This document shows positions 1 to 32,690 of a stretch of 64,000 bases of DNA, in pieces. The stretch is taken from assembly GCA_020536535.1 (NCBI GenBank), contig JAHLWZ010000869.1, forward strand, positions 1,595-65,594, in the 5' to 3' direction. The translations under genes were made by a program, and so were the position numbers. The notes under the pieces are model-generated. The model saw only the letters and a list, made by a program, of their open reading frames with translations, was not told where the DNA came from and ran no database searches. Numbering within the stretch: position 1 is the stretch's first letter; the number at the start of each line of letters is the position of its first letter. This stretch comes from Pelomyxa schiedti (lineage: Eukaryota > Protista > Evosea).

Positions 1-2665
1 TGAATATGACCATACCTTCAAGGGAAAAGCAAACCATGAACAGGTGACAGCGCTTCAGACGACGAATCAAAATGTCAGTAAACCGTATGGATTCATCATG
101 AGTCCTTACAAACACTGCAGGATGATGGTTGGTTTCAGAGAAAATAACACTCAGAATGTGAAATACCAGTCAAGCCCACTACCTATAGGGGGGGTGGGTA
201 TGAAGGAACACTCATTTTAAAGAAGGAAATAGATGGTTAGCTGTGCTTGTTATGTGAGATGGCAAGCAGGTACCTTGGTGTTTGTTTGCAAAATCATTCG
301 GGGTGGATAGTCATTGTCAAAGGGTGTCCGAGATTCCTTCCGGCAAAATTGATATGCCAATGTCATTGCTCCTACTCCAAATTCTCCTGCACAGAACCCA
401 TCAGAAAACGAAACAGGATGAAAACAAGGAAAAACTACCAAGGATCATGCAGGAAAGTTCAATTTCTGTTGGTTTCGGCGATCCCTCAACAATAAAGGAA
501 CCAAGTCCACTCGAAAATTGCTTGAAGAACTTTTCACAGTACAGGAACTGATCTTTTCTCAGATTCCTCGATTCCCAGTACGAAGGTGAGTTCGATATTT
601 CATCTACCAACACAAGAAAGTCCTTTTGTCTGGGCTTGAAAAAAATTTTCAGTTGGTGAAGTTCTTACCCTACAAACTCGCCTGCAACGATAAAGATCCC
701 TTGGGGGTAACAGCGAAAGGATTTCAACAACAGTGAACAGCGGTATCATAATTCCCTTGAGTTATCAAATTTGTTTTCATAATATGTGTATAAACTGTGA
801 GGAGATTATGAAATTGAGTCTACCTTCCTACTAGAAAGAGACTCGAAGACATGTATTAGTTCAAGGTTGTTTGATTGCTGTGCCAACTGGGATGGTTGCC
901 CCACATTCGTTTGGATCTAGTACGCAATTAGTTGTGCCTTGGATCCACTCCGTCATACGCTTGGGTTTGCATTGCTTTCCTGGAGTGTACTGGCATTAAA
1001 GAGGAAATACTGCAAACTTTCTAGGAGTTGCATACCAGAAGCACTCGTGTCATCAAGGTATTTTTGCTCATAACCGCAATGTGAAGTGGGGTGAATCCAT
1101 CGTTGTCAATAGTATTTGGGTTCATCTTTCCCTTGTTGAGAAGCTCCTTGACAAGTGCACAGTTCCCCGATCTGACGGCGAGAAATAGACAAGAAGCTCC
1201 TTTTTTAAACAAAAAAAGAAATGAGCGGGAGTCAAAGCTACACCTTCGGGAATACCTCGATATTGCACTTTGGGATCTACTCCCGACTTGAGTATTGTCC
1301 TTACAACTTTGTGAAGAAGTGGATCTTCAAGTGGTGGGAGATTGGAGCTTGACCTACACAGTAAATGCAGAGAATGACGTCCGTCATTTGTTTTTGCTGT
1401 TGGTTCTGCCCCTCTCTTGAGAAGTGTCCATGCAATCTACATGGAAACAGTTAAATACCTGAGTGAGGAAAATAAAGGAAAAATTCAGATTTGGTGTACA
1501 GAAATACGATTTATATGACACCTTCGTTTGACCTGTGCTTACTGCAGACAGAAGAGGAGTCCAGCCATGCCTGTCCACTGAGTCTACATGTGCACCGCAA
1601 GATAGCAGCCACTTAACAAGTTCATAATTTCCACAATGACTACTGATAGTTATTTGGACAGCCGAAGAAACTGGTGTCGTACCAAGCAGCATGTAACAAT
1701 GTTGTGCCAGATATATCAACTTGATCAACCCCAAATGTCGTCACTGCCGCGGAGAGTGTTCTCTTCAGTTCAGGAGAAAAAGTCGGTGAGACTTCCACAA
1801 GCTGAATGAGAGAAGCCGTCTTATTATTGGTAGAGGCAGGTACATATGCCACCCAGTCCACATTGAAGTCGGTTTCCTATAATGATATCAACAGGTGTGT
1901 ACATGAGTGACACTGACCTCAGTGTTGAGACCGATAATGCCAAAGCTATTCCTTGTGATATCAGTTATGCTTGTGGATTGGAGTTTATATGAAAAACCAG
2001 CTGGACCTTTTGTGACCCAAGCAGAAACATGTGGTGGTGAATCAAAAATTTTCCCAAAGGAGATCCTTTGAAAATTAGGAGGGCTTCCTGGGAAGGAGTA
2101 CCTACGTGAGGTGTGCATTTACTGCTGCTGAAGATTTGGGTGCAACGTGAACTTTGCCACTTTCAAAAGCAATTGTGTGCAGAGGGAGGGACCGAAAAAC
2201 CTCTGATTAAGTTTAGGGGTGGCAAATTGGTACATTGCCATGGACATAACATACCTTGAAACGAAGCCCTCAGTTGTGTGAAAGACTTCTTTTCAACGTC
2301 AATCAATTCCTTTTCTTTTTAGATTCAGACCTTTTTGTTTTAGACAGAGATTGATTACTCAATGTAAGTTGATCCCTCAAGCAGGTATTTACAGCCTCCA
2401 GTTCCAGCATTTCCACTCTATTGGAATCCACCTGCGGACAAAAAAAGTGTACAACTTAGTTCAAGTAAAGCCATAAAACGCCCACCAATTCTAGGAGCTG
2501 CTGATTTTTTTCCGTCAGTTCCCTCACGGCATTTTCGAGTGCCTCAATTTTCAGTGATGCCGTCTCACCCCCACCTCCCATAATTGCTACCATCACCCCA
2601 CTCCCGTCACGTGGTAGACTTGACGAGGCGGACACAGGTGGCGCCGTATGTCGGGGAACATCCAT
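1..2665 (-). CDS. Multi-exon protein, 3' end outside window: coiled coil, H-type-lectin-like domain, ankyrin repeats, F-box, degenerate Ras-like domain
   Basis: Manually spliced exons: ISFGKIFDSPPHVSAW...ETDFNVDWVAY (H-lectin-like); DRHGWTPLLSA and DNDGFTPLHIAV (ankyrin); IPLFTVVEILSLLPPRDLYRCRRVCR (F-box, ~670-756); CMILGEFGVGAMTLAYQF and LFMVCFSLE (Ras-like). Intron 387-438 has clean GT-AG ends. ATG at 2665 (MDVPRH). Confidence 0.75.
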
Positions 2666-2729
2666 GGGTGGCGGGTGCAACCAATACTGCAGACTAGCAG
2701 CTAGATGATCACAGCGACTTGGTGTCTTT

Positions 2730-4667
2730 TGGTCTCTCTCTTGAGGTTTTTCGTAGAAAATTATCATCGGTGCCACAAACCATACCATGGTCACCTGTGA
2801 GCCACAACAAAATCTACAGTTACACCCTTGTGACTTGCAAGATTCCACTCTGCAGTATTGAATACATTTGCCTGGGTTTACCAGATATTCCCTCCAGCAT
2901 TGTAACTGATTTGGCTTTGCCTCTGGCATGGTGCAGGGTGGGCAGAGTGATGGTAGAAAATTATCTTCTGATTGAGATCTCTGGGAAGTACACTTGTAAG
3001 TACGGTGCGCCAACGCGTAAGACCCACGTAACAACGCACTCCCTTGACACCTGTAATGCACAGCCGATAGCGATGCCGAAGTCCATCCACTCCTCAACGG
3101 TGCAGTAAGAAAGAACCTAGCAACTGGTGTTGGTTCGAACCATCAGAATCTCCTTGTTGGTTGGTGACGCAGCAAGATGGATGATTCTGTGTAGATACTC
3201 GTAAGCTCGATCCGCATGCGGAGACGAAGAGAAAAGATGCACTTGGAGGAAACAATTGGTTCACTGGAGTCGGGATGTCAAGATGTCTGAAAGATCAAAG
3301 GAAAAGACGGCCTTTCGAACTCGAACAGGATTGTATCAATTTACAATGATGAGCTTTGGCCTAGTCAGCGGACCAGCAACTTTTCAGAGGTTAATGGGAC
3401 CTTACACTAGCTGTGTTGACACCTGAACATTGCCTTGTGTGCATTGATGATTAATCATTTTTCTCGAGAGGATCATTAAATGAACCCCTACCTGACGTTG
3501 TTTATTTGTAGACCAGCTTCTCTGAGACAATCAAACATCTTTCTTACCCACCCTGAGATGCTAAAGAAAGAACTTACCAAGGCACCGATTTTTGCCAATA
3601 TCCGCGGTGGGACAAGCCATTTGCTATCGAAACAGACGTTTCAACTACAGCAATATAAGATGGTCGTTATTGCTACCAGAGTATGATTATGAGGTCATAG
3701 ATCGTGCGGGACATTTGAGCTTGAGGATTTCGGAGGGCTTCAGTCGAGAGCTGAGGCCAAGGAAGAACCAGAAGTGGTAGGTAACGAGCAAAGGTTGGAT
3801 GTGCAGCAAAGGCAAGAGCAGGAAGAACGTCTGCAAGAACGAGTGTCTGATTGATGTAACAGAGCAAGAAGTAGCTCAAAAGCAGAAAGAACATCCTGAT
3901 GTGAAAATATTCTACGAGTTGTGCTTAGGCAATTACAATGTATTGAAGGATGTGCCTGAAGCACCAAAGATTCAAGTTACCTTGTTCAGAAAGAGTTCTT
4001 GAGATTGGTTGAGGGAACACTATGGAGACTGGTGATACCAGCGAAGAATCCTAAACGAACTCAGTGTTGGTGTTTTTTGTGTTTCGAAAGGACCATTGAG
4101 ACGGCGATTGTTGCAAAACTATCATGATGACCTGAGAGGGGGGGAACATAGAGGGGGTGCGAAGATGTATGTTGTTCTTTCAGAAAAAAAATACTGGTGG
4201 CCAAGGATGTTTGAAGAAATCAAGGAGTGGGTTTCATCCTGTACCACATGTCAACAATTTCGAAGACATAAAGCTAGATATCAACCTAGAAGCATCGAAG
4301 CTACTGAACCCAATAAATGTGTGGCAATTGACCATTCTCTGTGGGACCATTCCCATAAACTGGATCCGGAAAAAACTCTACGTTGTGTGTGGTCGATCTA
4401 TCTCCAAAGATGGTCAAATGGTTGAAAACCCTAAATACAGAAGCAGCAACTATAGTGAGATGTATCGAGAAACGTTGGATGGTTCCGCAAGGAGGTCTTA
4501 AGTATTTGGTCTGTGACAGAGATACAGCGTTTGTGAATGATCTTAATACGGAAAATGTGGCAACAGCTTGGGGTATTCGTAGAAATGTGGTTACGGCATA
4601 TCATCCACAATCTAACGGTGAAGCTGAGAACGCTGTCAAGAATGTAAAGCATTGCGTAGAAAAGTAA
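2730..4667 (+). mobile_element. Degenerate Ty3/gypsy LTR-retrotransposon pol remnant (RT, RNase H, integrase)
   Basis: RT fragments FCVDTRKL and [32 protein letters not shown]; decayed catalytic motif (CIDD then stop); RNase H-region RWSLLLPEYDYEV; integrase HHCC region (YHDD..GEHRG..KYWWPRM..CTTCQQF) and core (VCDRDTAF, TAYHPQSNGEAE). RT-RH-INT order is gypsy type. Many stops and frameshifts; no LTR found. Confidence 0.9.
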
Positions 4668-5404
4668 GTACTTCGAAAGTACAGAAAATCATGCAAGTCT
4701 ATAAGCGACGAAATTACTGCCGGTGAAGAGACCGAAGAAACCACAACCACGTGCAGTAACACAACAACCCACAACATCAAAACATCAACGTAAAAAGGAC
4801 CAACAACCAAAACAACAGACACCAAGTCCACAAGCATTACCTACAACCAAACAAGCCACTACAACTGGAGTGACAAATGACGGCATTGCCACTGACACCC
4901 TCAATGACCAGATCTGACACCGACACCGGAAACACGTGCACCTCCACCCACCGCCTCTCCATTTCCCAACAACAAGTTCCACGCCTCCTTTCACCTCACC
5001 AAACTTCATATTTGGAACGCACGCAGGGAGACGATCGATCGCTGGGGTGCACACCCCGTGGACAAGACGGGGCAATGGCGGAACACTTAAGGGAAACCCA
5101 ATTGATGAAACCCAACTGGGGCCATTTGCGCGCCATGGTACCCAAGACCGGGTGGGTCATCCTCCAGGTCACCCCAACACCAACTCGTGCACACGCCGAC
5201 GCGCAGAGAGTCCGATGCCGACGGACGCATCGCCAGACATCATCAAGGACAGGGTCTGGCCTTGCTTCGCTGCGGCTGATTATTGTATCGGATTAGCTTT
5301 TCTTTTCTATCGAGGTGTTCAACTATGGCAACCCCCAGCAGGAGCTGACCGGCCTTTCCCAAGTTCGGTTGTACGGGGACCATCGGAAAATTCTGGATAT
5401 TTTT

Positions 5405-5911: not shown

Positions 5912-8900
5912 TTAAGATTTGAAATTTTGTTTGTCTGCAGCCGACTTGGGGTCCAATCTATTAGCACTTAGAACAGTAAAACAATGCAGGAAAGGAGACA
6001 TACGTGGTGCCTACTCCTTGTACTACATTGTCAATTGTTTCTGGAAAGGTATTGTTTGTGAGAGTGAGGAACGCAAAGGCGGCGGAACAACCTGTGGCCG
6101 CGGCTATTGGGCTGAACACTACAACTGGAAGTGCCTTGAGTAATGCAAATAGGAATCCCTAGTTGACAGTGGGTTTAGTGTGTGTGCCGGTTGGAAAATG
6201 GCGTTTCACGCACAGTTCCGCCTGACTTGTGGTATTCTTCCATTGGAGTGCTGTACGCAGTCTCAGCAACGACTTGGAATTCTCGGGAGAGGCTGTTACA
6301 GGCAAGGCGGAGGCCGTCCTGGGTTCCTTGTGGAGCCGCCGGTTTCTTCCCACTGGGTGCACTGCTCTTTCCGCTCTGTTGTTTTGGGTTGGAATTTGTT
6401 CCTCACTCGCAGTAATCTACACACAAGCCAGTCATTGGTCCAAGATACGCCATCCCTTACATTCCCGCTAACGCATGAAAAGAAATCCAAAGCCTCCTTT
6501 CCAACAATCTGTTTATAATAAGTTTGACTTGTCCTATGTGTTACTATGTGCATGGTACTTACTGAGGCGAGGCCCACAACTCCGCGATTAATACCTTACG
6601 GAGAACACTTGTTCGTGAAAGGGTGCATTCATGAGAGTTGAGATTACCGAGAAGAAGGCTTCTGTCCTTTCTGTACTGGTCGATAGGAAGCAGAAAAACG
6701 TTCGCCATGCCACTTCCAAGATTCATGAATGTTCGGAGTGGTCTTACACCTTGGGGGAGGAAGGAAAAAGTTATTTCGAGGAATCGACTGGAATGTGGAT
6801 ACCTGTGGTTGTAACTTGAGCATATAACGTCAACTTGTTTGCAAACAGCTTGTTAACAACAACAACCAGAAGACTCCCCCAAGAATTGCATTCCATCTTG
6901 CAAAAGGATTTTTAGTTGCAGTTTTTTTTTTCCTTTCGTATTTGTACTTGATTTCCCTCCAAGAGAAGCCTAGGTAGTGAAATCTGAGCGCCACTGATTG
7001 TAAACAGGTTCCAAATTTCTTGGCTGGAATTTACTAGGTTTTTCAAGTCCAGTCTCTTTGCTACGTAGTCCAACGCGAATTTTATGGGGGCGATATCCAC
7101 TTGGTCTGAGTAAATGTGAGAGTCTGAACAAAGTCGACAAGCTACAAACCAAATACTATGTCATAACAAGGTAACTTAGTTTCATTTAGAACATACGCCC
7201 AATTTCCAAACAGCCATAATGCTGTATCTTGATCAATATGAAGTTTAAATGGGCGTACACCAAACTGCAGAAATTTAGAAACTAAAAGATTTCCGAAGTG
7301 TAATATTGAAAGGTACTTTGACAAGAACTCGGTCTTGGGTGATTCCCTCAGCAGGTGTACGAGATAAAACGGAGAACTCCATACCATGGAGTGCTGTGTG
7401 CCAAGGTTTGTCCCTATCAAATTCAAAGATCCTATTCAACTCGGAGCACATCAGGTGGTCTTGAAGCTGAATGACAGTCAGTCATTCCGAGCATTTAATT
7501 GATGCACTCAACCTCTAAATTCTGCAGTGTCAATGCGAAGTAAGAACTAAAAGCTCCCAAGGGAATTATGTAGTAACGAACTGTCATGCCAGAAAGACGC
7601 AAAAATATGCACTCTAAAAGAATTAAAATTTGCTGTGGGTTTTGAACTTGAACCTGATTTCTTGCGTTTACTGCTGGAATGTGCTGTGACAATGGGGTTT
7701 TCTGCCCATGGGTAATACGGGCTTGCTGTGGGAGCTGGCTTTTTTGATGTATCACTTGAGGAGGGGTCAGGCCAGTCCAGGTCACAACAAATCCGCATAG
7801 AAATGTTCAACTGCGCAATGACCACTATGTGTCCCGGGTTTTGACATCTGTTCATTTGATATGAAAAACCACACTCAAGGGAACCAACACCCAAGGGAAA
7901 AATACCCTGATGGGAGAGAAAGAATGGTCTGACATTCAGGTTTTTCAGAGATGTAATCATCCACCCTGTTCACAAAAAAAGGATGGGATGGGTTGTGAAA
8001 GTGAATGGCCGGTTCTGAACTTGAGACCTTGAGACTTGGTTATTTTGGGAGAGTAAAATTTTGGAGTTACATAAGAATGGGTGGATCTTGTGGGTGGAGT
8101 ATGTACGGAATCCACAAGTTTCGTTGGTAGCTCAGACTGGTTGTGTAGTGATGTTTGCAGGAATTTTGGGTCACAGAGGGGTATTATTCCTGGTGCATTG
8201 TTTGTGGAAGGGGAGATTAAAGGTGTTGCTTGCGTAAATGAGTATTGATTTAATAGCGGCACTGCTGGAAGTTGTGGGTTGGGACTAAAGGAAGGCAACG
8301 GCGATTGCACGGAAGTTGGGAAAGGTGGAAATGGAGCGGGAAGTGCCGTGTTCGACGGGAAAAATGGACTCTTTTGCGGCTGAGTTGATGGTTGTGGATT
8401 GAAAAATGGTTGAGAGTGCTGTAATTGGAGTGCTTGAGGGTTTTGAGGAAATGGTGGAAGTGGTGTAATTTGAGGAAAAGAAAACGGGGAAGTTGGTTGA
8501 TGTTGAGGGTTATTGTAGGGTACCTGCTGCTGTGGAAACGGTGGCTGTTGCAGAAAGTGAGGCTGCTGTGGAAATTGTGGCTGTTGCAGAAATGGTGTCT
8601 GCTGTGGCGGTTGCTGATGAAAGGGTGAAGTATGTGACCCAAAAGATGGGGGAGTTGTGAAGGAAATATCATGTGGGGTGTTCGTATCAGTTGTGATACT
8701 CCGAAAAGGGGAATGGGGTGGAGATGTGCCAGTTGCTGTGGAATGAAGCCCTGATAAACCCTTTTTAAATGAAAACTGTTGCATCTGTTGCTGAAGTAAT
8801 GTTTGTTGAGCTTGTTTTAAATGGGTAGGTAAGGGTAAATGTGGGTTGGAACTGGGGACTTGAATGCCTTCGTGTGTATCATCAAGTGGAATGGAAATGT

Positions 8901-11900
8901 CATCTTCGAATTCCTCGTTCGTGTGCGCATCCTGTTTGTGAGATTGTGTGGATGAGGAGGCTTCAATTTTGCGGAGTTCGGGCATGACTCCGCTCTGTAG
9001 AGGTGGGGGGATCGAGAACGTTGTGACAGGGGACCTTGATTTCCCCAGAGAGCACAGGTACTGAAGGAAATTGGCATTCAGGTATTGTTTGGAGTAGATT
9101 ATGAACTCAATCAGGACACTCAAGCTGTCAATGCAAAATTCCAAGTCAGCATGAATTTCCGAAAATTTGACCTGCGTGTTTTTTTGGTTATTTTGCTGTT
9201 TATGTATAAGGTTTTTAAAAAACCTTCAAAGGAGAGGAACCAAAGGGGGGCTTCAATTTAAGGGCAAAATCAAGATTTCCAACTTCGGCAAAATTCATTT
9301 CCTTTTTCAATGTGAAACGAACGTTAAAAAAAAACTTGGATACTTTCAAGTGAGTTGAGAAATTTTGGCTTGGTTGAAAAACGTCAGTGACTGACTTGGT
9401 CACAAAAAACTTCCACATGTGTGCTCTGATATCAAAGGTAGGTCTGGATGCAACAGGCAGAAATATCTTCAAAACCATTACCCATCCAGGTTTTCATGAG
9501 AAAAAAGAACCTTTGTCTGCCCAGTCAAAATTATGGCACATTTTGGTAAGAGGAAACCGAATTTCAAAGCAATGTCATTGGAGGAGATGTAAAACTGCTA
9601 GTGTTATTCATGATATGGCAGATATAAATCATACTGGGATGCCACGAGAAGGAGAAATGTTAGTAAATGAGAACGCAAGTAGGTTTTCTAGCCATGAGCC
9701 ACAGGAGTCTTTTGTTTGTTCATATTATGGAATTAATATATGAAGGAAGGGGTGGGGGCCAAAGACAGATACCTGGACACAGGTCAATTGTCAGGCCATC
9801 TACATGTATGGATATTGCCTGTGAGTGGGAAGCGTGGTCATGGACTTGGGCTCCCTCACGGAGGTATTTCCCAGAACTAAGTACGGAAGGAGTGGCCTGT
9901 GCATCTTCTGACTGTAACATCAGATTAATAACCAGAAAAAAAATTTTTTTCTGATATTGGGAAGGTGGATTTACGTCATTAAACTTTGTCTTATACAGTA
10001 CTGCTATAGGTGAGACTTTTGGTGCATGGCATAGTACAGTCAACGACTGCACACTGTTGACAAAGTAGTCCACCATCTAGATCTTCCCCAGTCAAAGAAA
10101 AAGTCTACAGGATTCATTTTTTAGGAAATAATACCCTTCCATGGAAGTTGAAAATGTGGATGTGAGTTAATTCCACAAAGCGGACCTCTTCCCACAGATG
10201 CATGTGATCTGATTCTGGGTGCTTGAGATTGATATAACCTAGCAGCAGAGTAAAAAACCACGATTTGTTGAGGAATGGAAACCAGTAGCGCATTTGAAAG
10301 TAATCGAGAAAGCATTCACATTTGGTTTCTATGATTTTTTTTTTTTTTTGTAATCACTTCAATGAGTTTGTACTCATTTCTTATGACTTACTGTTTGTTT
10401 AGAATAGTCTTGGCAGTAGGACTGAATAAAAGAAAGAAGCTGCTCATAAATCTTGGGGGTAAGATCCAGAGATAAATTTGGAACATCTATCTGCAATAAG
10501 TACATCTGCTACTGTGTTACCACTTGACACAATAACTTGGAATAGAGTACTGAAGCTTCTTGGGCAGCACCCATAAAAAACGATCTTTCATTTTTGGACA
10601 TCAGTGGAGACGGCCACGGGGTTGCTGAATAAGTTTCACTGTCGATGACTAATGTTGGCTGGGTGGAAAAGGGAGAATCTTTTGGCGCCTTCAAGGATTG
10701 CAACAATGTGGAGCCTATGTTGATACTATCACTGTTGAGGGGAACAGTTGGGGTTTCTGGCACACTGTGCTGGTTGGGAGGCAAAGTTTGTTCAGGTGAT
10801 TCTTCCTGAACTATAAGCTGGATAGGAGGCTCTTGGGATGTGTTAGTCTGAGGCATGGTGATCTCCAGTACACGTTGTGGAGCAGCTAAAGTTTTTGTTG
10901 GTGAAAAAAACCAAAAGAGACAATCAACCTGCATTTTCTTTGATGAAAGCTCTCAGAGTTTCAAAGTTGAAGGTGTATTTTCCCAAGGTACTTCTGAAAT
11001 TGAGTGGTATTTCATGTAACTCCAACGAGATACCTTTTCATAAACAACCCACAGGCTTCAACAATAAGTTCAGAGTGTTCAAAGAAATGGATTGAAGCAG
11101 TAATGGTCCTTGCTTTGACTGTGATATCTGTATTATGCCGAACTTGGTTCTGTTTTTGTTGGCTTTAATTTTTTTATTTTTTTGTATTTTATTTTGTGGG
11201 TGGTGGTAGGTTTTAGGGGTTTGTGCATTAAAATTATGATACCACAGGTTTTGCTAAGCTGATGTATTCCAAAATTCGGCTGTGGAAGTCACCTCTGGAA
11301 GATCTGAGGGGGATTAGATTATGTTTATTTCGGAGCCGAACCTCATTGAAAGAAATGACTGGCTCATACTGGTTCCATGTGAGGCAGTGCAAATTCCTTC
11401 CCAAAGAAAGAGTATGGGTTGCAATAAAGATGCAGCGTGAGAAGATGTTGCATCCCAAAAAACTTGAATATCAGGGAAGTCACACTTTATAGTGGCACTG
11501 GGACCGGTTTCTGAAAGCTGGAGATCATATGGCAGGAAATGAGTGACTCTAGTTTATGAATGATGTGTACCCTCAGTTTTATCTTAATGGAAAAAGGAGA
11601 ATCCATCAGAGATGTTTCACTGGAAGTAACCCTAAGGCATGGTCTGGGGAAGAAATTTGATACATTAATACTGAATGGAGGTAGTGAAGAACATACATGG
11701 TACTCAGGAGGGCTCCGTCTTCTTTTTGTTGTCAAATCATAACATACATGTATAAAGATGTGTAGAAAAGAAAAGGTGATAGTACCATATATGTTCTTTG
11801 CAATTCTCAGGCATGATTGAAACTTGAAGGAGCGCTTACTTTTAGTCCGTTTGTAAAGAGCGCTGAAATTGGATAAAGTTGCACAAATCTCAGTGGAGGG

Positions 11901-25230: not shown

Positions 25231-26430
25231 TCAACAGCAAGTCCTTTTCTTTGGTGGGGGAAAATCATCATCAGCCTCTGCTACAAGGTGGAGGGATGGT
25301 GCCTTGGAGAGGGTGGAATTTGTTAGGAAAGTGTATATTTGGTGGCACAGGTGCGAGAATGCAAGGTCCACATTGATTCCTTCTTTGGAACTGACTTCAC
25401 TGTAAAGCGGTTTAGTGCAAAGTGGTTACTGTGTTGAGGAACACAACAAGAATGAAACTCCGAGTGAATCAGCTAATTTCTGACCTTCCTCTGTAGAGAC
25501 TTCCCTGCGGCCCATCTCACACTGTGAAAGTTCAGTGATAAGAATAAGAAAGAAGGAATCCACCTTGTTTCCAATAAGAATCTTTACAGCGTTATCGCAG
25601 GCATATCTATCGATTTCACCGAGCCAGTGCTTAATATTTATAAATGACGGTTTGTTCGTCACATCACTGGTTGTGGAGGAGATTCTCATTAGCAGCATTA
25701 AAAAAGGAATGACAGAGCACACTATACAATGGCAATGCCATGAGCACCACGGTAATCTGATAGAGTTTCTAGTTCAACAATAGGAGTTTTGTTGTTTTAT
25801 GGAGACTTTACATGAACTCACAATGGTGCGGAATCTAATGAATAGTCTTTAGAAGACAAGAATATGATAAAAACTACTGCATACCTTTCGGAACCAGCTG
25901 TGTCCCACTGCGATAAAAGTTAACCTCATAATTATAGGAAGTGGAATTACTATTTGAAGTCGTATTGTGTGTGTTTCTAGTTGTACAGTTTTTAATTTCT
26001 AAGTGGAATTAACAAGGAAAAAACTATTAGAGTGAACGATAGGTTGGGGTCAGACATAGTCAACACCTATGTTGAAGATCAGCCCAAAAATTCTGCAAAG
26101 TAAATGACACACCAATGGTGCATGCATAATTTGGATCGTATCTATTTTCCTGGAGCTATTGAACAAAAAATAAAAAATGAAATAATACGGACTGTAAAGC
26201 GAAGAATAATGGAGCCTGAACAACCTAAGTAAAAACAGTTGACAAAGATGCTGGAAGTTACTTTTTCCCACGTTAGGGTCACCAATCATCAACAGTTTAT
26301 AGCTCTCCCTAGTGGAATAAACAAAGCGCACCGAAAACACAAATTTCCAGCAACACAGTGATTATTAAGGAAAAAGTTGTTGGACTCGTGCACACAAAAT
26401 AGGCTCATTCACGGGTGGTGTGCCACTCAT
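25231..26430 (-). CDS. Rab1-like small GTPase (divergent)
   Basis: Spliced: [74 protein letters not shown]-stop (CC prenylation motif). Confidence 0.9.
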
Positions 26431-26717
26431 TTCGCTATCTCTTCAAACAACCAATTTGTGAAGTTTGAACTTTTTAAAAAGGAAGTACTGTTACTTCAAG
26501 TGCTCTGACACTCTTACTGGATACACTGCAACTCCCCCTTGCGCAGGACACACGCAAGGTGTCTTCTGCTTAGATCTCAGATGGCTATCCTAGTTGCAGT
26601 TCCAAATCGGGAGAGTTTTCCTCTCGTTGTATAAACGCACTTCAATTCCGTGTTGCAACACAGCAGCTGGTCACTTCCACAGTCGCTCCACTTTAAACAA
26701 GCAAAGAAAACCTAAAC

Positions 26718-29700
26718 ATGCCACTCAAGGCACGCGGACGAGGAGGCAGAGGCCGAGGCCGAGGCGGCCGCGGCTCCGGCTTTCGTGGAGGTAAAGGCGC
26801 CAGGGGCGGCCGAGGAGGGTTCCCCAGCAGCAGCAGAGGGGTAGGCGATCCACAACGAGGGGGGCGCGGCCGAGGCAGCAGAAGGGGAGGCCGAGGCCGC
26901 GGCTGGGGAAGCACCACGGCGCCATACCTGAACGCAGATGCCTCCATGAGCTCCGACGATGATGAAGACGAGGAAGAGGAAGAGGAAGAGGAAGAGGACG
27001 ATGAGGACGAGGTTGTGGAGGTTAAGAAGCCCGCGGGGAAAGGTGCCAACAAGGGAAAGGGAAAAGGAAAGAAGGCGAGCGCCGACGGGGACGACGAGGA
27101 CTCCGGGGAGACGGCGACGGGGAAGAGGGGGCCAAACTGGCCGAGGAAGGGCGAGAAGGCCCAGGGCGAGGACGAGGACGAGACGGGGCCCACGCCCAGG
27201 AAGAAGCCGCGCAAGGCGTCGGCCCCAGCTGCGGTTGCTAAGAAAGTGCCCCCGGCCGAGGAGACTCCAAAGGCAAAGGCCAAGGCCAAGTCCAAGACGG
27301 GGAAGAAGGCCCAACCACCACAAAAGCAACAGCCTGCCGAGAAGAAGGAAAAACCACAAGCTAACGAAAAGCAGAATAAGCAGAAGCAGCAGCAGCAGCA
27401 ACAGTCACCAAAGAGCAAAAAGGGAAAGCCTGCTGAACCTTCTGAGAAGAAAACACCAACTGAAAAGGAAGCCGGAGTGAATGCCAAGGAAGGAGAGAAG
27501 AAAGCAAGCCAAGGAGAACAACCCACAGAGCCTAAGAAGCAAAGCAAGTCAAGTAAAAGAGCTCAAAAAAAGAAGCTGAAAGCGCTCGCAGCCAGTGCTG
27601 CAAGTGAAAAGGATAGTACACCAAAAGAAGCGCTCCCATCCACTGCACAAGTGAAGGACAACGAAATCTCAGAAGCCACTACTCAACCACCAGCAATACC
27701 CCTTGATCCAGTCTTGCCATTACCCGCAGACCACGTGCCAACTACTGCATCTCCTACCGAAAATATAGCACCAACCCCAGTTCCCACTACCGAAACTCCA
27801 TTGTCCACGTCTAACCCTCTATCTGAGTCCTCATCTAAAGCCACCTCTGAGCCAGCATCTACTACAGAGGCTACCCTTAAACCAGCGTCTGTGGCCCCAC
27901 CGATTGGAGTCTCCTCAATTTGTACCGTCCCTTTGGAACACCATGATGCCTATACAGGGAAAATTCTAAAGATCGACCTTACTGCTGTATGCCTATGAAA
28001 ATTTGTTTCTCTTGGAAACTGCTTACTAGGGAACTTGCATTGAAGAACCAACCTCTGCAGAGATGAAGCGCAAATGGGTTGGCGCAAGAGGCTTTGGCAC
28101 CAAGTGAGTCGATATACCTTTTATTTTCTTTTTCCCCTATGATATCGTTACATTAAGTGTAGGATTATCAGTGATTTAGTTGATCCCAAAATCGATCCTC
28201 TATCCCCTGCAAATGTCTTAGTTTGCGCTACGGGGCCTCTAACAGCAATTGGAATTTCTACTGGTTGTTTCACTTGGAATTCGCGCCACCACACTAATTT
28301 CCAATACACAGGAGCACGATGTACATTCGTGGCAAAAGGTGCCCTTACCAACACACTTTCCACTGCCAGTGTTGGCGGTAACTTCGGGATTTCACTCAAA
28401 CGAAGTGGGTATGATGCCATTGTTTTCACTGGCAAGTCTCCCGCACCAATCAATCTTGTTTTACGGGTTGGCACTCCGCTTCGTTAGCCGAGACTAACCT
28501 TAGAAAGGCGGGAGAGAGGCCCATTCTTGCTGATGCTTCCTCTCTTTGGGGTTCTGTTACATCTGCGACGTTTGAGGCCTTACACACCCAGTACAAACCT
28601 CTTAGCGTTGCTTGTATTGGCCCAGCAGGAGAAAAACTCAGGTATTTCAGTTGGAAAATAGTAACTGTGACTTAGTTGCTATGTAGTAAAATTGCTTGTA
28701 TAATGTCAGACAAAAAGCACGCAGCAGGGCGTGGAGGCCTTGGTGCTGTGATGGGATCAAAGAATGTGAAAGCAATCATTTGTTGTGGTGGTTCAGTAGT
28801 AAAACCACATGACGAAACACTCCTGCGAGAGGCATCGTCTGCATCTCATTTATGGTCCTTTCTAATGGCTTGTAAGGTGCATAAAGAAAAATGCAAAAAA
28901 ATGGTTGCAAACGGCGTTGTTGGGTTACTTACTAAGCATGGCACAAATGTCCTTATGAAAGGATGTAATGATGCAGGAATACTACCATCCCTGAACTTCA
29001 AGAGTGGTCATACTGATGCAACCACATGCGAACCAGTGTGTAATCAGGTTTTTTCCCTTCATTCTCACCTATGTGGCATATAGGCAACAGGAGAATATGT
29101 TACTGAGCATTATCTAAAAAAGAATGAAGGGTGCAATAACTGTCTTATTAGATGTGGCCGAGTTGTAGAAATAGAGGGGAAAACACTCTACGGTCCGGAG
29201 TATGGTAAAGCAATGTCTTTCCTTTCACCTTTGCTCACCTCCCTTAGAATCTGCCTGGGCCTTTGGTCCCAACTGTGAGTTTTTTTTTTTATATGCTCAT
29301 GAAATATTCTAAACATGAAAGGTGGAATATTCGATTTTGCTGCTATAACAAAAGCCAACGCTATATGCAATGAATATGGCATTGATACAATCAGCGCCGG
29401 TGGCACAATTTCCTGTGCAATGGAGATGCACGAGAAGGGCTACCTCTCGGAACCAATTAAATTTGGCGTAAGTTTGTTTTGACCATTTGAAAAGTTCTAA
29501 CCACGAAAATCAGAGTGCTGAAGCACTTGTCTCTTATATAGAGAAGATGGGCAAATTGGAACCAGGAATTGGAGAAGAACTTTCTGAAGGATCACTTCGG
29601 TTCTCCACAAAATATGGACACTCAGAATTTTCAATGACTGGTGAATTTTTTTGGTTATTTGCCACATCTTAACTCTTCCACCAGTGAAGGGGCAAGAGCT

Positions 29701-30419
29701 TCCTGCCTATGATCCACGAGGTCTTCAGGGAATGGGTATAGTGTTCCAACAGTAGTTTTGGTTACTTAAAGTGAATAGGATTGAACTACTCGACCTCAGT
29801 ACGTGGGGGATGCCATGTATACGGCTATACCACAGCCGTCGGTAAGAGCCAAAAGTATTTTGTGAAAATAACATGTTAAAGAGCATGTTGGCAACCCCAT
29901 AAAACTGGACCCAAAGGCTACAGATAGCAACAAGGTTGCAACTGTCATTGCATTCCAGAATACTGCAGCATTCATAGATGCTGTAGGAATGTGCTTGTTC
30001 TCGTCGTTCGCGTTGACTGCCGATGATTACACAGACTTGTTTTGTGCCGCAACTGGTTTGACTGGGATAGACAAGAGCACTTTTGGTGTAGAAGTTGGGG
30101 AAAGGTACAAACCAACACCTTTTGCGAATGGCGATTTACTTCTTCCAGAATATGGAATGCACAGAAACTGTTCAATGAAGCCGCAGGCTTCTCCTCCAAG
30201 GATGACACCCTCCCGACCCGTTTACTTAACCAGCCACTCGATTTCGGTGACCTTCAGGTTGCTTTCTCTCGGTCCAGTCCTGCCAGAAAGTCCTAACACC
30301 AACCAAAGGGCCAAACTTGGAAACGCGAAGAACTGCTGGGTCAGTACTACGCCCAGAGAGGCTGGGATGCCAACGGGAAGCCCACTCCTGAAAAACTCAC
30401 TGCACTGGGCTTGCTCTAA
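26718..30419 (+). CDS. Aldehyde:ferredoxin oxidoreductase (W/Mo-pterin AOR family) with ~410-aa low-complexity N-terminal extension
   Basis: [119 protein letters not shown]...LGLL-stop. More than ten GT-AG introns. Confidence 0.92.
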
Positions 30420-30849
30420 GCGAGTCCTACCACTACGGGGCCTTCCCTGTTCAGACAAATTTCCTTTAGTCTAAAACCTTTTTTTGGCTGGGGGTGAAGT
30501 TTTCCCGGCGTCCAAAATAATTAAGAAAAAGCATGCAATTCCGCGTACCACCAATTTCATCGCCCTTTTATGACAGTTGCACCTCTTTGCATATTTTCTC
30601 GTTGTGAAATAGGATTGACCTTTATCAGTACCATTTTTGATTGTGATATCCCACACGACTAACAACCTTCTCCCAGAACACCGAAGGAAAACCGTTTTTT
30701 TTTTGTTTTGCTGCTGGGCTTCGTTGGTGTCCCGGTGGGGATTTCGCTGTGTGTTGCATCTTTTTAAAATTTTTTTTGGTGGGCTAATTCGTTCGTTCTT
30801 TAAAACTGTTGTTGTTTGTGTAGGAGTAGTGTTTAGAGGAAGGAACATT

Positions 30850-32690
30850 AAGTCAAAATGCTGGAATGTAGTGTTGTTGTTGTTGGCAGGAACGAGTGTG
30901 GACGGGCCATTGAGACTAGAATATTGCAGTCGTTCTCTACAGTGGTAATATCCTTTTGCTAATGTACTGTTACTTTTTGCCCAGAAAATAGTTGTAACAT
31001 ACCTTATAATAAAAAGGCACCTCTTAGGGAGTTGCTTGATACAGCAGTGGCTGCAGTGGGGGAGAATAGTCAATATTTGAGGGTTTGGGCAGTTCTGAAA
31101 GGAAGAATAATCCGAGATCAATCTGCTCCATTAAGTTCTCTTCTTAATCTATTAGGTACCTACTACACAGATAAATGCGTTTACTGTATCCCTTCGTTAT
31201 ACTTATAAACAAACCATCACGCAGGCTCCCCTCCCGTTCTCCACGTTTGCTTTTCCCCTCGAAAAATTACTGCCCCACTCAAGCAAATAACAATGGGAAC
31301 ACTATTTTGCACTCCGCACCCTGTTTCAGAGAGTTCTGAAGTAAAAAATACCTCCACTCCTCAACCTCTTTTAACAATAGAAAGATTTGTTCAAATGCGG
31401 TGACAGCACTATCGCAATCCACAGAACAGCCTTGGGTTCCATGTGACTGGATAAAAGTGAGAATATTTTTCGTTTGGTGTGTTATTAAGGTCCACCCTGA
31501 CAGGGACTGCAAAAGCTAGAGTCCATTCTGCAGGTGACTACACCGACAGAAAGTAGTGAAACGATGAAGCTTGGTAAAGCCTTCTCTCATGCCCTCTAAG
31601 TGCCAACTACTTCTAGCAAATATTATCTCCCATGCCTGTTTATCGCTCTCAGACTTGCAACTCCAGTTACGAGGTTTACTGATCTCTGAATCTGAACTTG
31701 ACAATCATTGGTAGGAACACAATACAACTTGAAATTTGCTTAAAATCTTAGTGTAACCAACGTGGGACCTAAGGCTATAGAGGAATGCCAAAAAATGGCA
31801 TCAACCCTAACAGTAATGGCTGCAACTTTGTCAAGCTTCAGTGGTTTAAACCAACACTCTGACACACATCTCTTTACCTCCAGCATTGGTCTCCTCTCCG
31901 TTCAATCAACCCGTGAACCAATGCTCAAAAAACCCACTCGGCTTCAACTTGCATTCATGCTGGGTACAGTTGAGAGACCTCTTCCTGCACATAACCACGG
32001 ACTTGTATGCCTTTCCTGATATGACTGGGATACCGTTTTCCCTTCACCTTTTGTTCCTTACATCGAAATAGGACCAACTGAACAACCACGATCATACCTG
32101 TTTTATTTATGACGCCCACCATGTGGCACTGTGCCTCATCCTCCAGATGATTCTCACGGCATTTCAAGCCGGTGGAGCTTTTCTAGGGATTATTAACAAA
32201 CAATGCATTCAAGATACTCGCAAAGCACTTAGTAATCTGGGAATGGCTCCGGACCAACTACTAGAATCCAAGCGAATTGCATTCGTTGACAACGATGCCT
32301 ACCTAGAAGTACCTAAGCCACTTTTGCGATTAATATAGAATGACAGAGTTATGACTATTATTACGCTCAAACTAATACCAACCAAAGGAAAAACCTTCTG
32401 CACAAACACGGGAACTCGGTGTGAGAGATTTGCTTCAGAACACTTTGACATCATCTGGACTGGACAACTTATATGTTGTTGGTGATGTCAGATATCCTGG
32501 TGATCAGCCACAGCCCGCACAGGACTTTTTTAGCAACCAAATTCTGGAATATGAGAAGATAATAACACCAGGGACGTATACACTGCTTTCCGCAAGAGGG
32601 ATATGTTTATATGAGAGGACTGCATTCCCTCCCCCATTCCTTGATAGCCTTGTTGCCACTCATAGATTTGAGCTCACTGCACACTCATAG
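30850..32690 (+). CDS. Multi-exon protein with C-terminal MEDS sensory domain; N-terminal part possibly ubiquitin-like
   Basis: Exons 32072-32690 give HDHTCFIYD...RKALSNLGMAPDQLLESKRIAFVDNDAYL...LYVVGDV...ILEYEKII...GICLYERTAFPPPFLDSLVATH, matching the MEDS pattern from memory. Start codon not located. Confidence 0.65.

Follow-up and report, generated by a model that had tools for sequence, protein, structure and literature searches.

Does the nucleus of an anaerobic amoeba hold a working gene for an aldehyde:ferredoxin oxidoreductase (AOR), and if so, from where was it acquired and what could its product do? The question is raised by a locus on contig JAHLWZ010000869.1 (65,594 bp) of the archamoeba Pelomyxa schiedti, from which a stretch of 64,000 nucleotides (nt), referred to here as the window, was analyzed. 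In comparative genomics and recent reviews, the AOR/WOR family, and the use of tungsten in general, are regarded as restricted to bacteria and archaea; according to a 2026 paper in which more than 4,000 WORs were classified, eukaryotes have no known tungsten-containing proteins (PMC13328260), and a 2018 survey found that eukaryotes have only a few members of three molybdoenzyme families (PMC6147048). We show that the locus is a true nuclear gene of P. schiedti, that it is expressed and that it encodes an AOR-family enzyme of the AOR sensu stricto type. Our overall reading, to which we assign a probability of about 0.75, is that this gene was acquired from an archaeon, that its product would work by the mechanism of a pterin enzyme and that it would be translated with a long N-terminal extension.

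A single gene was delimited at positions 26718 to 30419 of the window on the forward strand, running from an ATG at 26718 to a TAA stop codon at 30417–30419, which is exactly the extent that a first-pass annotation had proposed. It contained 16 exons and 15 introns and encoded a product of 1004 amino acids (aa). A 423-codon open reading frame (ORF) opened at the ATG and had no stop codon before it entered the first strand of the AOR domain, and downstream of it short coding blocks alternated with spacers of 40–59 nt flanked by GT..AG. An initial exon model was obtained by threading GT and AG sites into an uninterrupted coding sequence and was then corrected with joints observed in RNA. For the latter we used contigs from four public SmartSeq2-type single-cell runs (described as "protist metagenome"), which were placed on positions 26300–30700 and matched the window with zero mismatches, except for one differing letter in one piece of run X3. 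Each of the 15 introns was removed in the RNA contigs (15 joints, four runs), and RNA word depth was 17–25 across the AOR part. The first-pass annotation had described an AOR gene with more than ten spliceosomal introns and had held that a lack of spliced transcripts would speak against it; spliced transcripts were present in the four RNA runs.

The RNA joints placed the exons at 26718–27986, 28030–28103, 28163–28263 and 28312–28466 (exons 1–4), 28508–28641, 28687–28831, 28877–29035 and 29084–29204 (exons 5–8), 29248–29274, 29322–29467, 29514–29640 and 29685–29735 (exons 9–12) and 29779–29841, 29882–30104, 30149–30257 and 30309–30419 (exons 13–16). The threaded model was upheld for 13 of its 14 introns; one donor was found at 29036 rather than 29048, and one additional intron with GC-AG borders was revealed. 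The final set therefore comprised 14 GT-AG introns and one GC-AG intron, all 40–59 nt in length. The number of introns and the use of a GC-AG site fit the intron style published for the P. schiedti genome, where a gene has on average 7.43 introns and 1.59% of introns are GC-AG. Transcript contigs stopped at 30485–30490, approximately 70 nt past the stop codon, and so define a 3' untranslated region at 30420–30490.

The GC-AG intron occupied 28832–28876 (45 nt, in frame) and its joint was seen in runs X1, X2 and X3, the GC..AG borders being read within a 3-nt ambiguity of the joint, so that the RNA joints of three runs ruled out this segment as coding sequence. The GenBank model (1019 aa, P0151), which maps to contig JAHLWZ010000869.1, is equivalent to the 1004-aa model plus 15 residues read from the unspliced GC-AG intron. 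An AlphaFold model of the 1019-aa protein, computed from 46 sequences, gave a predicted local distance difference test (pLDDT) score below 50 for this insert (approximately residues 626–639), which is independent support for the view that the 15 residues are not part of the protein. At the same site the paralogue described below has a GT-AG intron. The GenBank gene model with its retained intron needs correction.

The assignment to the AOR family was supported by profiles, structure and trees. Nine exon translations matched Pfam AFOR_N (PF02730, profile positions 37–198) followed by AFOR_C (PF01314, 2–347) in colinear order, and the GenBank product bears both domains. By Pfam and alignment, AFOR_N (domain 1) is encoded by exons 1–6 at 27939–28831; AFOR_C (domains 2 and 3), for which the structure model was also used, is encoded by exons 7–16 at 28877–30416. 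Together they make up the catalytic part of the protein, aa 408–1004 (597 aa), which was 43% identical to an AOR of Thermovirga that is itself near-identical to the Pyrococcus furiosus AOR (E 9e-299). When a 120-aa piece of an ORF was compared with the PDB, the top matches were 9mqx_D (6e-13) and 1aor_A (4e-10); AORs as a group gave values of 6e-13 to 1e-8, and FOR and WOR5 were weaker at approximately 1e-6. In the AlphaFold model pLDDT exceeded 90 over almost all of residues 408–1019. Foldseek superimposed the model on 9mqx_D, 9g7j_A and 1aor_A with TM scores of 0.95–0.96, root-mean-square deviations of 1.1–2.5 Å, 40–44% identity and E values of 1e-57 to 1e-64, whereas FOR, WOR5 and BamB scored lower, with 22–28% identity. 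In the phylogenetic tree the gene fell within the same large clade as the P. furiosus-type AOR. The protein is nearer to AOR sensu stricto than to FOR, WOR5 or BamB.

Residues of the catalytic site were located by alignment and are given with the P. furiosus numbering in brackets. Three ligands of the [4Fe-4S] cluster, Cys696, Cys699 and Cys703 (Cys288, Cys291 and Cys295), are found in the motif CNNCLIRC (29132–29155), as placed by alignment to 1aor_A. The fourth, Cys895 (Cys494), ends the motif DAVGMC (29977–29994), which is also the second pterin-binding motif and contains Asp890 (Asp489). All four Cys were invariant in the 46-sequence alignment. The motif GGCHVYGY (29805–29828) carries His849 (His448), Tyr853 (Tyr452) and a Tyr in place of Lys450. 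The first-pass annotation had listed CxxCxxxC, EYE, DTIS and GGCH as intact, and all four are present; its view of the GGCH cysteine as a cluster ligand could not be retained, as that motif contributes the catalytic His448, and the role of fourth ligand falls to the Cys in DAVGMC. Glu718-Tyr719-Glu720 (Glu311, Tyr312 and Glu313) is encoded at 29198–29204 and 29248–29249, its last codon being split by the intron at 29205–29247. Arg484 (Arg76) is encoded at 28317–28319, His589, at the position of Arg182, at 28718–28720, and Tyr828 (Tyr427), within ELPAYDPR, at 29708–29710.

The first pterin-binding motif, NEYGIDTIS (29369–29395), departs from what we take to be the AOR consensus for such motifs, DxxGL(C/D)x. 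Its first Asp (Asp338) is replaced by Asn, as in all Methanomicrobia-type relatives, while the Asp at the sixth position (Asp343) is kept; the Asn is probably tolerated, though the motif is non-canonical. This change and that of Lys450 to Tyr are found in the whole clade, archaea included. Thr649 (Thr243) is encoded at 28943–28945 and is a second-shell residue (PMC12096430).

Comparison with the solved AORs of P. furiosus (1AOR) and C. autoethanogenum (9G7J) and with the AOR subunit in 9MQX gave the same picture. The three-domain fold, the four Cys ligands, the second pterin motif and the second shell of Thr243, Glu313, Tyr427 and His448 are common to all of them. The Pelomyxa protein differs from them in being encoded by a eukaryotic nuclear gene with 15 introns, in its 407-aa disordered extension, and in substitutions of two kinds, those of its clade (Asp338 to Asn, Lys450 to Tyr) and those found in eukaryotes only (Arg182 to His, Asn93 to Ser).

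Two further intron-bearing eukaryotic copies were identified. With the 120-aa ORF piece as query, HMMER was run exhaustively against 1.84 billion representatives; above approximately 50% identity the matches were limited to a cluster from P. schiedti and a single environmental copy. The P. schiedti paralogue, KAH3759801.1 (P0001), lies on contig JAHLWZ010000663.1 and is named "aldehyde:ferredoxin oxidoreductase [Pelomyxa schiedti]" in GenBank. It was 70% identical to the window copy over 597 aa, had the same residue set, and had 15 of 15 introns at identical positions and phases. It differed in its length of 603 aa, with its own Met six residues ahead of the domain and no extension, and in the GT-AG borders of intron 6. 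At the paralogue locus (8001–10627 of the retrieved sequence L002) the introns measured 41–87 nt and were all GT-AG; a divergent cytochrome-b5-like gene lay 75 nt away, and actin-kinase, NOG1, PAS-guanylate cyclase and RabGAP genes were found nearby.

The third copy was reached through a 105-aa match (P0002) and lies on a 5.8-kb environmental contig with a GC content of 40% (L083; ENA ERZ21831265 ctg17041l, equivalent to L084 from Logan ERR12015701). Its AOR gene, at 1545–3690, encodes 625 aa and is interrupted by 7 introns of 35–43 nt. The product was 59–61% identical to the Pelomyxa pair, grouped with them with support of 100/100, and likewise carries His182 and Ser93; five of its seven introns were at Pelomyxa positions. 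It differs from the pair in having only these 7 introns, two of them at positions of their own, and in a Cys/Ser-rich N-terminal tail of approximately 30 aa. The remaining ORFs of the contig were uninformative. Judged from its sequence, this contig represents a second eukaryotic host of AOR. A scan of JGI metagenome contigs with two eukaryote-type AOR motifs gave 0 matches.

The four Cys, Thr243, Glu311, Tyr312, Glu313, Tyr427, His448, Tyr452, Asp343, Asp489 and Arg76 were kept in all three eukaryotic copies. Of these, Thr243, Glu313, Tyr427 and His448, together with Tyr312, Tyr452 and Glu311, mark the aldehyde-oxidizing AORs (PMC12096430, PMC13328260). Between the three copies, which are 59–70% identical, the proportion of nonsynonymous differences (pN) was 0.20–0.29 against a saturated synonymous proportion (pS) of 0.77–0.87, and because synonymous sites were saturated dN/dS was not quantifiable. 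The 15 shared introns of the Pelomyxa pair, their 70% identity and the saturation of synonymous sites indicate that all of the introns predate an old duplication.

Trees were calculated with IQ-TREE under LG+C20 with posterior mean site frequencies (PMSF). The closest prokaryotic AORs, with 47–53.5% identity, were those of Methanomicrobiaceae, Methanoculleus, Methanofollis, Methanocorpusculum and Methanocella. The three eukaryotic sequences were monophyletic (100/100) and sister to the archaeal Methanomicrobiales/Methanocella crown, for which support was 97/84, and the joint eukaryotic and archaeal clade was separated at 100/100 from P. furiosus-type, clostridial, Asgard and other AORs. The phylogeny that the first-pass annotation had called for thus nests the eukaryotic AORs among prokaryotic ones, beside Methanomicrobiales/Methanocella. 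These nearest relatives have the HVYGY and NExG(I/L)DTIS variants in common with the eukaryotic proteins; they differ in retaining Arg182 and Asn93, and the eukaryotic sequences lie outside the archaeal crown. No member of the Methanomicrobiales/Methanocellales clade is found among the characterized AORs in PMC12096430 and PMC13328260. We infer from the tree and the introns that the gene was acquired laterally long ago and that the donor was an archaeon close to, or at, the base of the Methanomicrobiales/Methanocella AOR clade. After the transfer it would have gained spliceosomal introns and been duplicated once all 15 were in place, and it would be common to at least one other eukaryote.

The window copy begins with an extension of 407 residues (aa 1–407, 26718–27938), which shares its exon and reading frame with the first part of the AOR domain. 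It can be divided into an RGG-rich segment (1–76), an acidic segment (77–100), a segment rich in Lys, Ala, Glu, Pro and Gln (101–300) and one rich in Pro, Thr and Ser (301–407). Residues 1–407 had pLDDT values below 50 and no secondary structure in the AlphaFold model and are predicted to be disordered. No Pfam match to the extension was obtained, and Atlas feature scores did not exceed 0.69, a level within the noise that mirrors composition alone. On the evidence of the ORF, the window copy, unlike its paralogue, would be translated with a disordered, highly charged N-terminal extension of 330–407 aa.

The catalytic part is predicted to keep the AOR architecture, with one [4Fe-4S] cluster on four Cys, two pterin motifs and a Thr/Glu/Tyr/His second shell that surrounds the metal. 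Most likely the enzyme would act in the cytosol as a ferredoxin-linked aldehyde/carboxylate oxidoreductase and use a tungsten (W)- or molybdenum (Mo)-bis-pyranopterin cofactor. Published work on P. schiedti describes cytosolic pyruvate:ferredoxin oxidoreductase (PFOR), ferredoxin and eight hydrogenases, and dependence on an H2-consuming methanogen. The enzyme could exchange electrons with the ferredoxin pool already used by the PFOR enzymes and [FeFe]-hydrogenases of the amoeba. In one direction it would oxidize aldehydes, and the methanogenic symbiont would thereby be supplied with H2; in the other it would reduce acids to aldehydes, and these then to alcohols, as a sink for ferredoxin electrons. 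An archaeal relative and the Thermovirga AOR are, like the P. furiosus AOR, stand-alone genes with no polyferredoxin subunit genes, and they lie beside ThiF/MoaD-type genes. A ThiF/MoeB-like gene follows AOR in a Methanomicrobiales metagenome-assembled genome (MAG) (L004, 4790–5518), and MoaD-family and radical-SAM genes follow it on a Thermovirga plasmid (L001, 1976–3351); no ThiF/MoeB-like, MoaD-family or radical-SAM partner adjoined the amoeba AOR genes.

With a sequence of this kind, tungsten-dependent metabolism in the amoeba is possible. As a member of the DMSO-reductase type, FdhF, a Mo/W bis-pyranopterin enzyme, belongs to an enzyme family other than that of AOR. An FdhF homologue and a NifU-FdhD fusion, called unique among eukaryotes, were reported in the P. 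schiedti genome paper (PMC8887013), a second prokaryote-type pterin enzyme system described from this amoeba. These reports make pterin-cofactor metabolism in P. schiedti plausible, if indirectly.

The origin of the gene could be explained in other ways. Since the assembly was derived from whole-genome-amplified single cells rich in symbionts, prokaryotic contamination or an assembly chimera has to be considered, but this is vanishingly improbable: the spliceosomal introns are excised in RNA, the flanking genes on the 65.6-kb contig are eukaryotic (ribosomal L6e, RRM protein, PP2C, EF-hand, Arf/Ras GTPase, MORN and zf-MYND), exon GC of the gene is 47% against a published 54.8% in the methanogen symbiont, and the paralogue sits on a separate contig in eukaryotic surroundings. 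We excluded contamination on the spliced introns and eukaryotic flanks, the 15 intron positions common to the paralogue, the prokaryotic identity of no more than 53.5% and the separate clade beside the archaeal AORs, and the proposal of the first-pass annotation, a domesticated lateral transfer, has held up on the same grounds. A recent transfer from the endosymbiont Ca. Methanoregula pelomyxae is hardly credible either. The nearest prokaryotic clade is of the Methanomicrobiales type, and the symbiont, a member of that order, is published to lie free in the host cytosol and to be enriched around the nucleus; against this, no archaeal AOR exceeds 53.5% identity, the gene carries 15 introns, was duplicated long ago and occurs in another eukaryotic host as well, and a Methanoregulaceae AOR (L070) fell deep in the archaeal crown. 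Its forced union with the eukaryotic sequences cost 86 log-likelihood units and was rejected by the approximately unbiased (AU) test (p = 1.7e-5), and a recent transfer from a Methanoregulaceae-like donor was rejected with it. The position of this AOR and the AU result indicate a donor that was methanogen-related and not of the lineage of the present symbiont. The Methanoregulaceae gene itself (2986–4772, from a MAG) is split into two overlapping ORFs, by a frameshift or a sequencing error. Asgard (Promethearchaeota) genomes also encode AORs (L046, L064 and L078), which would favour vertical descent of the gene from the archaeal ancestor of eukaryotes, with loss in nearly all other lineages. 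We consider this very improbable, as these Asgard AORs fell in other clades, the eukaryotic clade was joined at 100/100 to the Methanomicrobia-type clade, and the search of 1.84 billion representatives gave so narrow a eukaryotic distribution.

What tells against the overall reading concerns the tree, the cofactor site and the transcript. The eukaryotic stem branch is long (0.6–0.96 substitutions per site) and could artificially attract the eukaryotes to the base of the archaeal clade. To our knowledge, no bis-pyranopterin cofactor has been described from a eukaryote. Arg182 is replaced by His and Asn93 by Ser, both in the cofactor/Mg region, in all three eukaryotic copies and only there, while the archaeal sisters keep Arg and Asn. 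These substitutions and the long stem would also suit a protein that has kept the fold and lost the pterin chemistry, now serving as an Fe-S redox protein or scaffold, with a charged extension that reflects its new role. The surveys of tungsten proteins and molybdoenzymes in eukaryotes point the same way (PMC13328260, PMC6147048), as does the absence of molybdenum- or tungsten-cofactor gene terms from the text and supplements of the genome paper, the genome itself not having been searched. We nevertheless judge such a loss unlikely. All second-shell residues, both pterin motifs, the first in its non-canonical form, and the four Cys are kept in three copies at 59–70% identity, a retention across diverged sequences that is hard to explain without a cofactor, and use of pterin enzymes by the amoeba is suggested by its FdhF and FdhD homologues. 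Mg is bound via main-chain atoms of Asn93 and Ala183 (PMC12096430), which correspond to Ser501 and Ala590 here, and the change of side chain may therefore not matter. Doubt of a similar degree attaches to the extension, which would not belong to the AOR protein if two transcription units had been merged or if most transcripts started downstream. RNA contigs covered it only at 26880–27184 and 27803–27986, none spanned 27185–27802, and RNA depth upstream of approximately 28070 was about 4–6 times below that of the AOR part; the paralogue and the environmental copy are without this extension. In addition, one complementary DNA (cDNA) 5' end was found at 26880, inside the annotated coding sequence, with the loose end GCAGAGTACATGGG in run X2, which we take to be the 3' end of the SMART template-switch oligo. 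With this 5' end the in-frame Met77 (26946–26948) would be the start, and translation may begin there, omitting the RGG tract. Separation of the extension from the enzyme is nonetheless improbable: the single ORF from 26718 into the first AOR strand is stop-free, the next in-frame ATG after Met77 is that of Met435, already 27 residues into domain 1, one RNA contig runs unbroken from 27803 over the exon 1/2 junction, and a 3' bias is expected of oligo-dT SmartSeq2 libraries.

The immediate neighbours of the gene were also inspected. An Arf/Ras-type GTPase gene (25231–26430, reverse strand) is divergent from the AOR gene, and the approximately 290 nt that separate the two start codons suggest a shared bidirectional promoter region. 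The next gene downstream, at approximately 30858–32690 on the forward strand (456 aa when spliced), encodes a Pfam MEDS domain, a prokaryote-type sensor, and may be a second laterally acquired gene beside AOR. As a sign of co-transfer we looked for a MEDS gene adjoining AOR in 80 prokaryotic AOR loci and found none.

The gene is a new eukaryotic member of the known AOR family and not a new kind of system. A concern of the first-pass annotation, that such a gene might already be widely documented, applies in part: it carries its name in GenBank, but no paper discussing it was found. Keyword literature searches gave no published report of AOR in any eukaryote, and neither the Pelomyxa papers nor the Mastigamoeba genome paper mention AOR, tungsten or molybdenum. 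AOR is missing from the metabolic reconstructions published for P. schiedti, a gap that the finding fills.

An intact, expressed, intron-rich and duplicated AOR gene in a eukaryotic nucleus turns the use of tungsten and bis-pyranopterin by eukaryotes into a testable question. It also represents a rare, well-supported transfer from an archaeon to a eukaryote, in which the recipient lineage hosts methanogenic endosymbionts and the donor was not the lineage of the present symbiont. That Pelomyxa and a related uncultured eukaryote run a working W- or Mo-bis-pyranopterin AOR, which would be the first catalyst of a tungstoenzyme family in a eukaryote, we place at somewhat short of even odds on the sequences at hand. 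If this is true, these amoebae would import tungstate or molybdate and build a bis-pterin cofactor of the prokaryotic type, probably with the system that also serves FdhF. Aldehyde and acid metabolism would then be tied to the flux from ferredoxin to H2 that feeds the methanogen, in a lineage obligately dependent on methanogenic endosymbionts, and the copy fused to a disordered region could place AOR chemistry at a specific cellular site.

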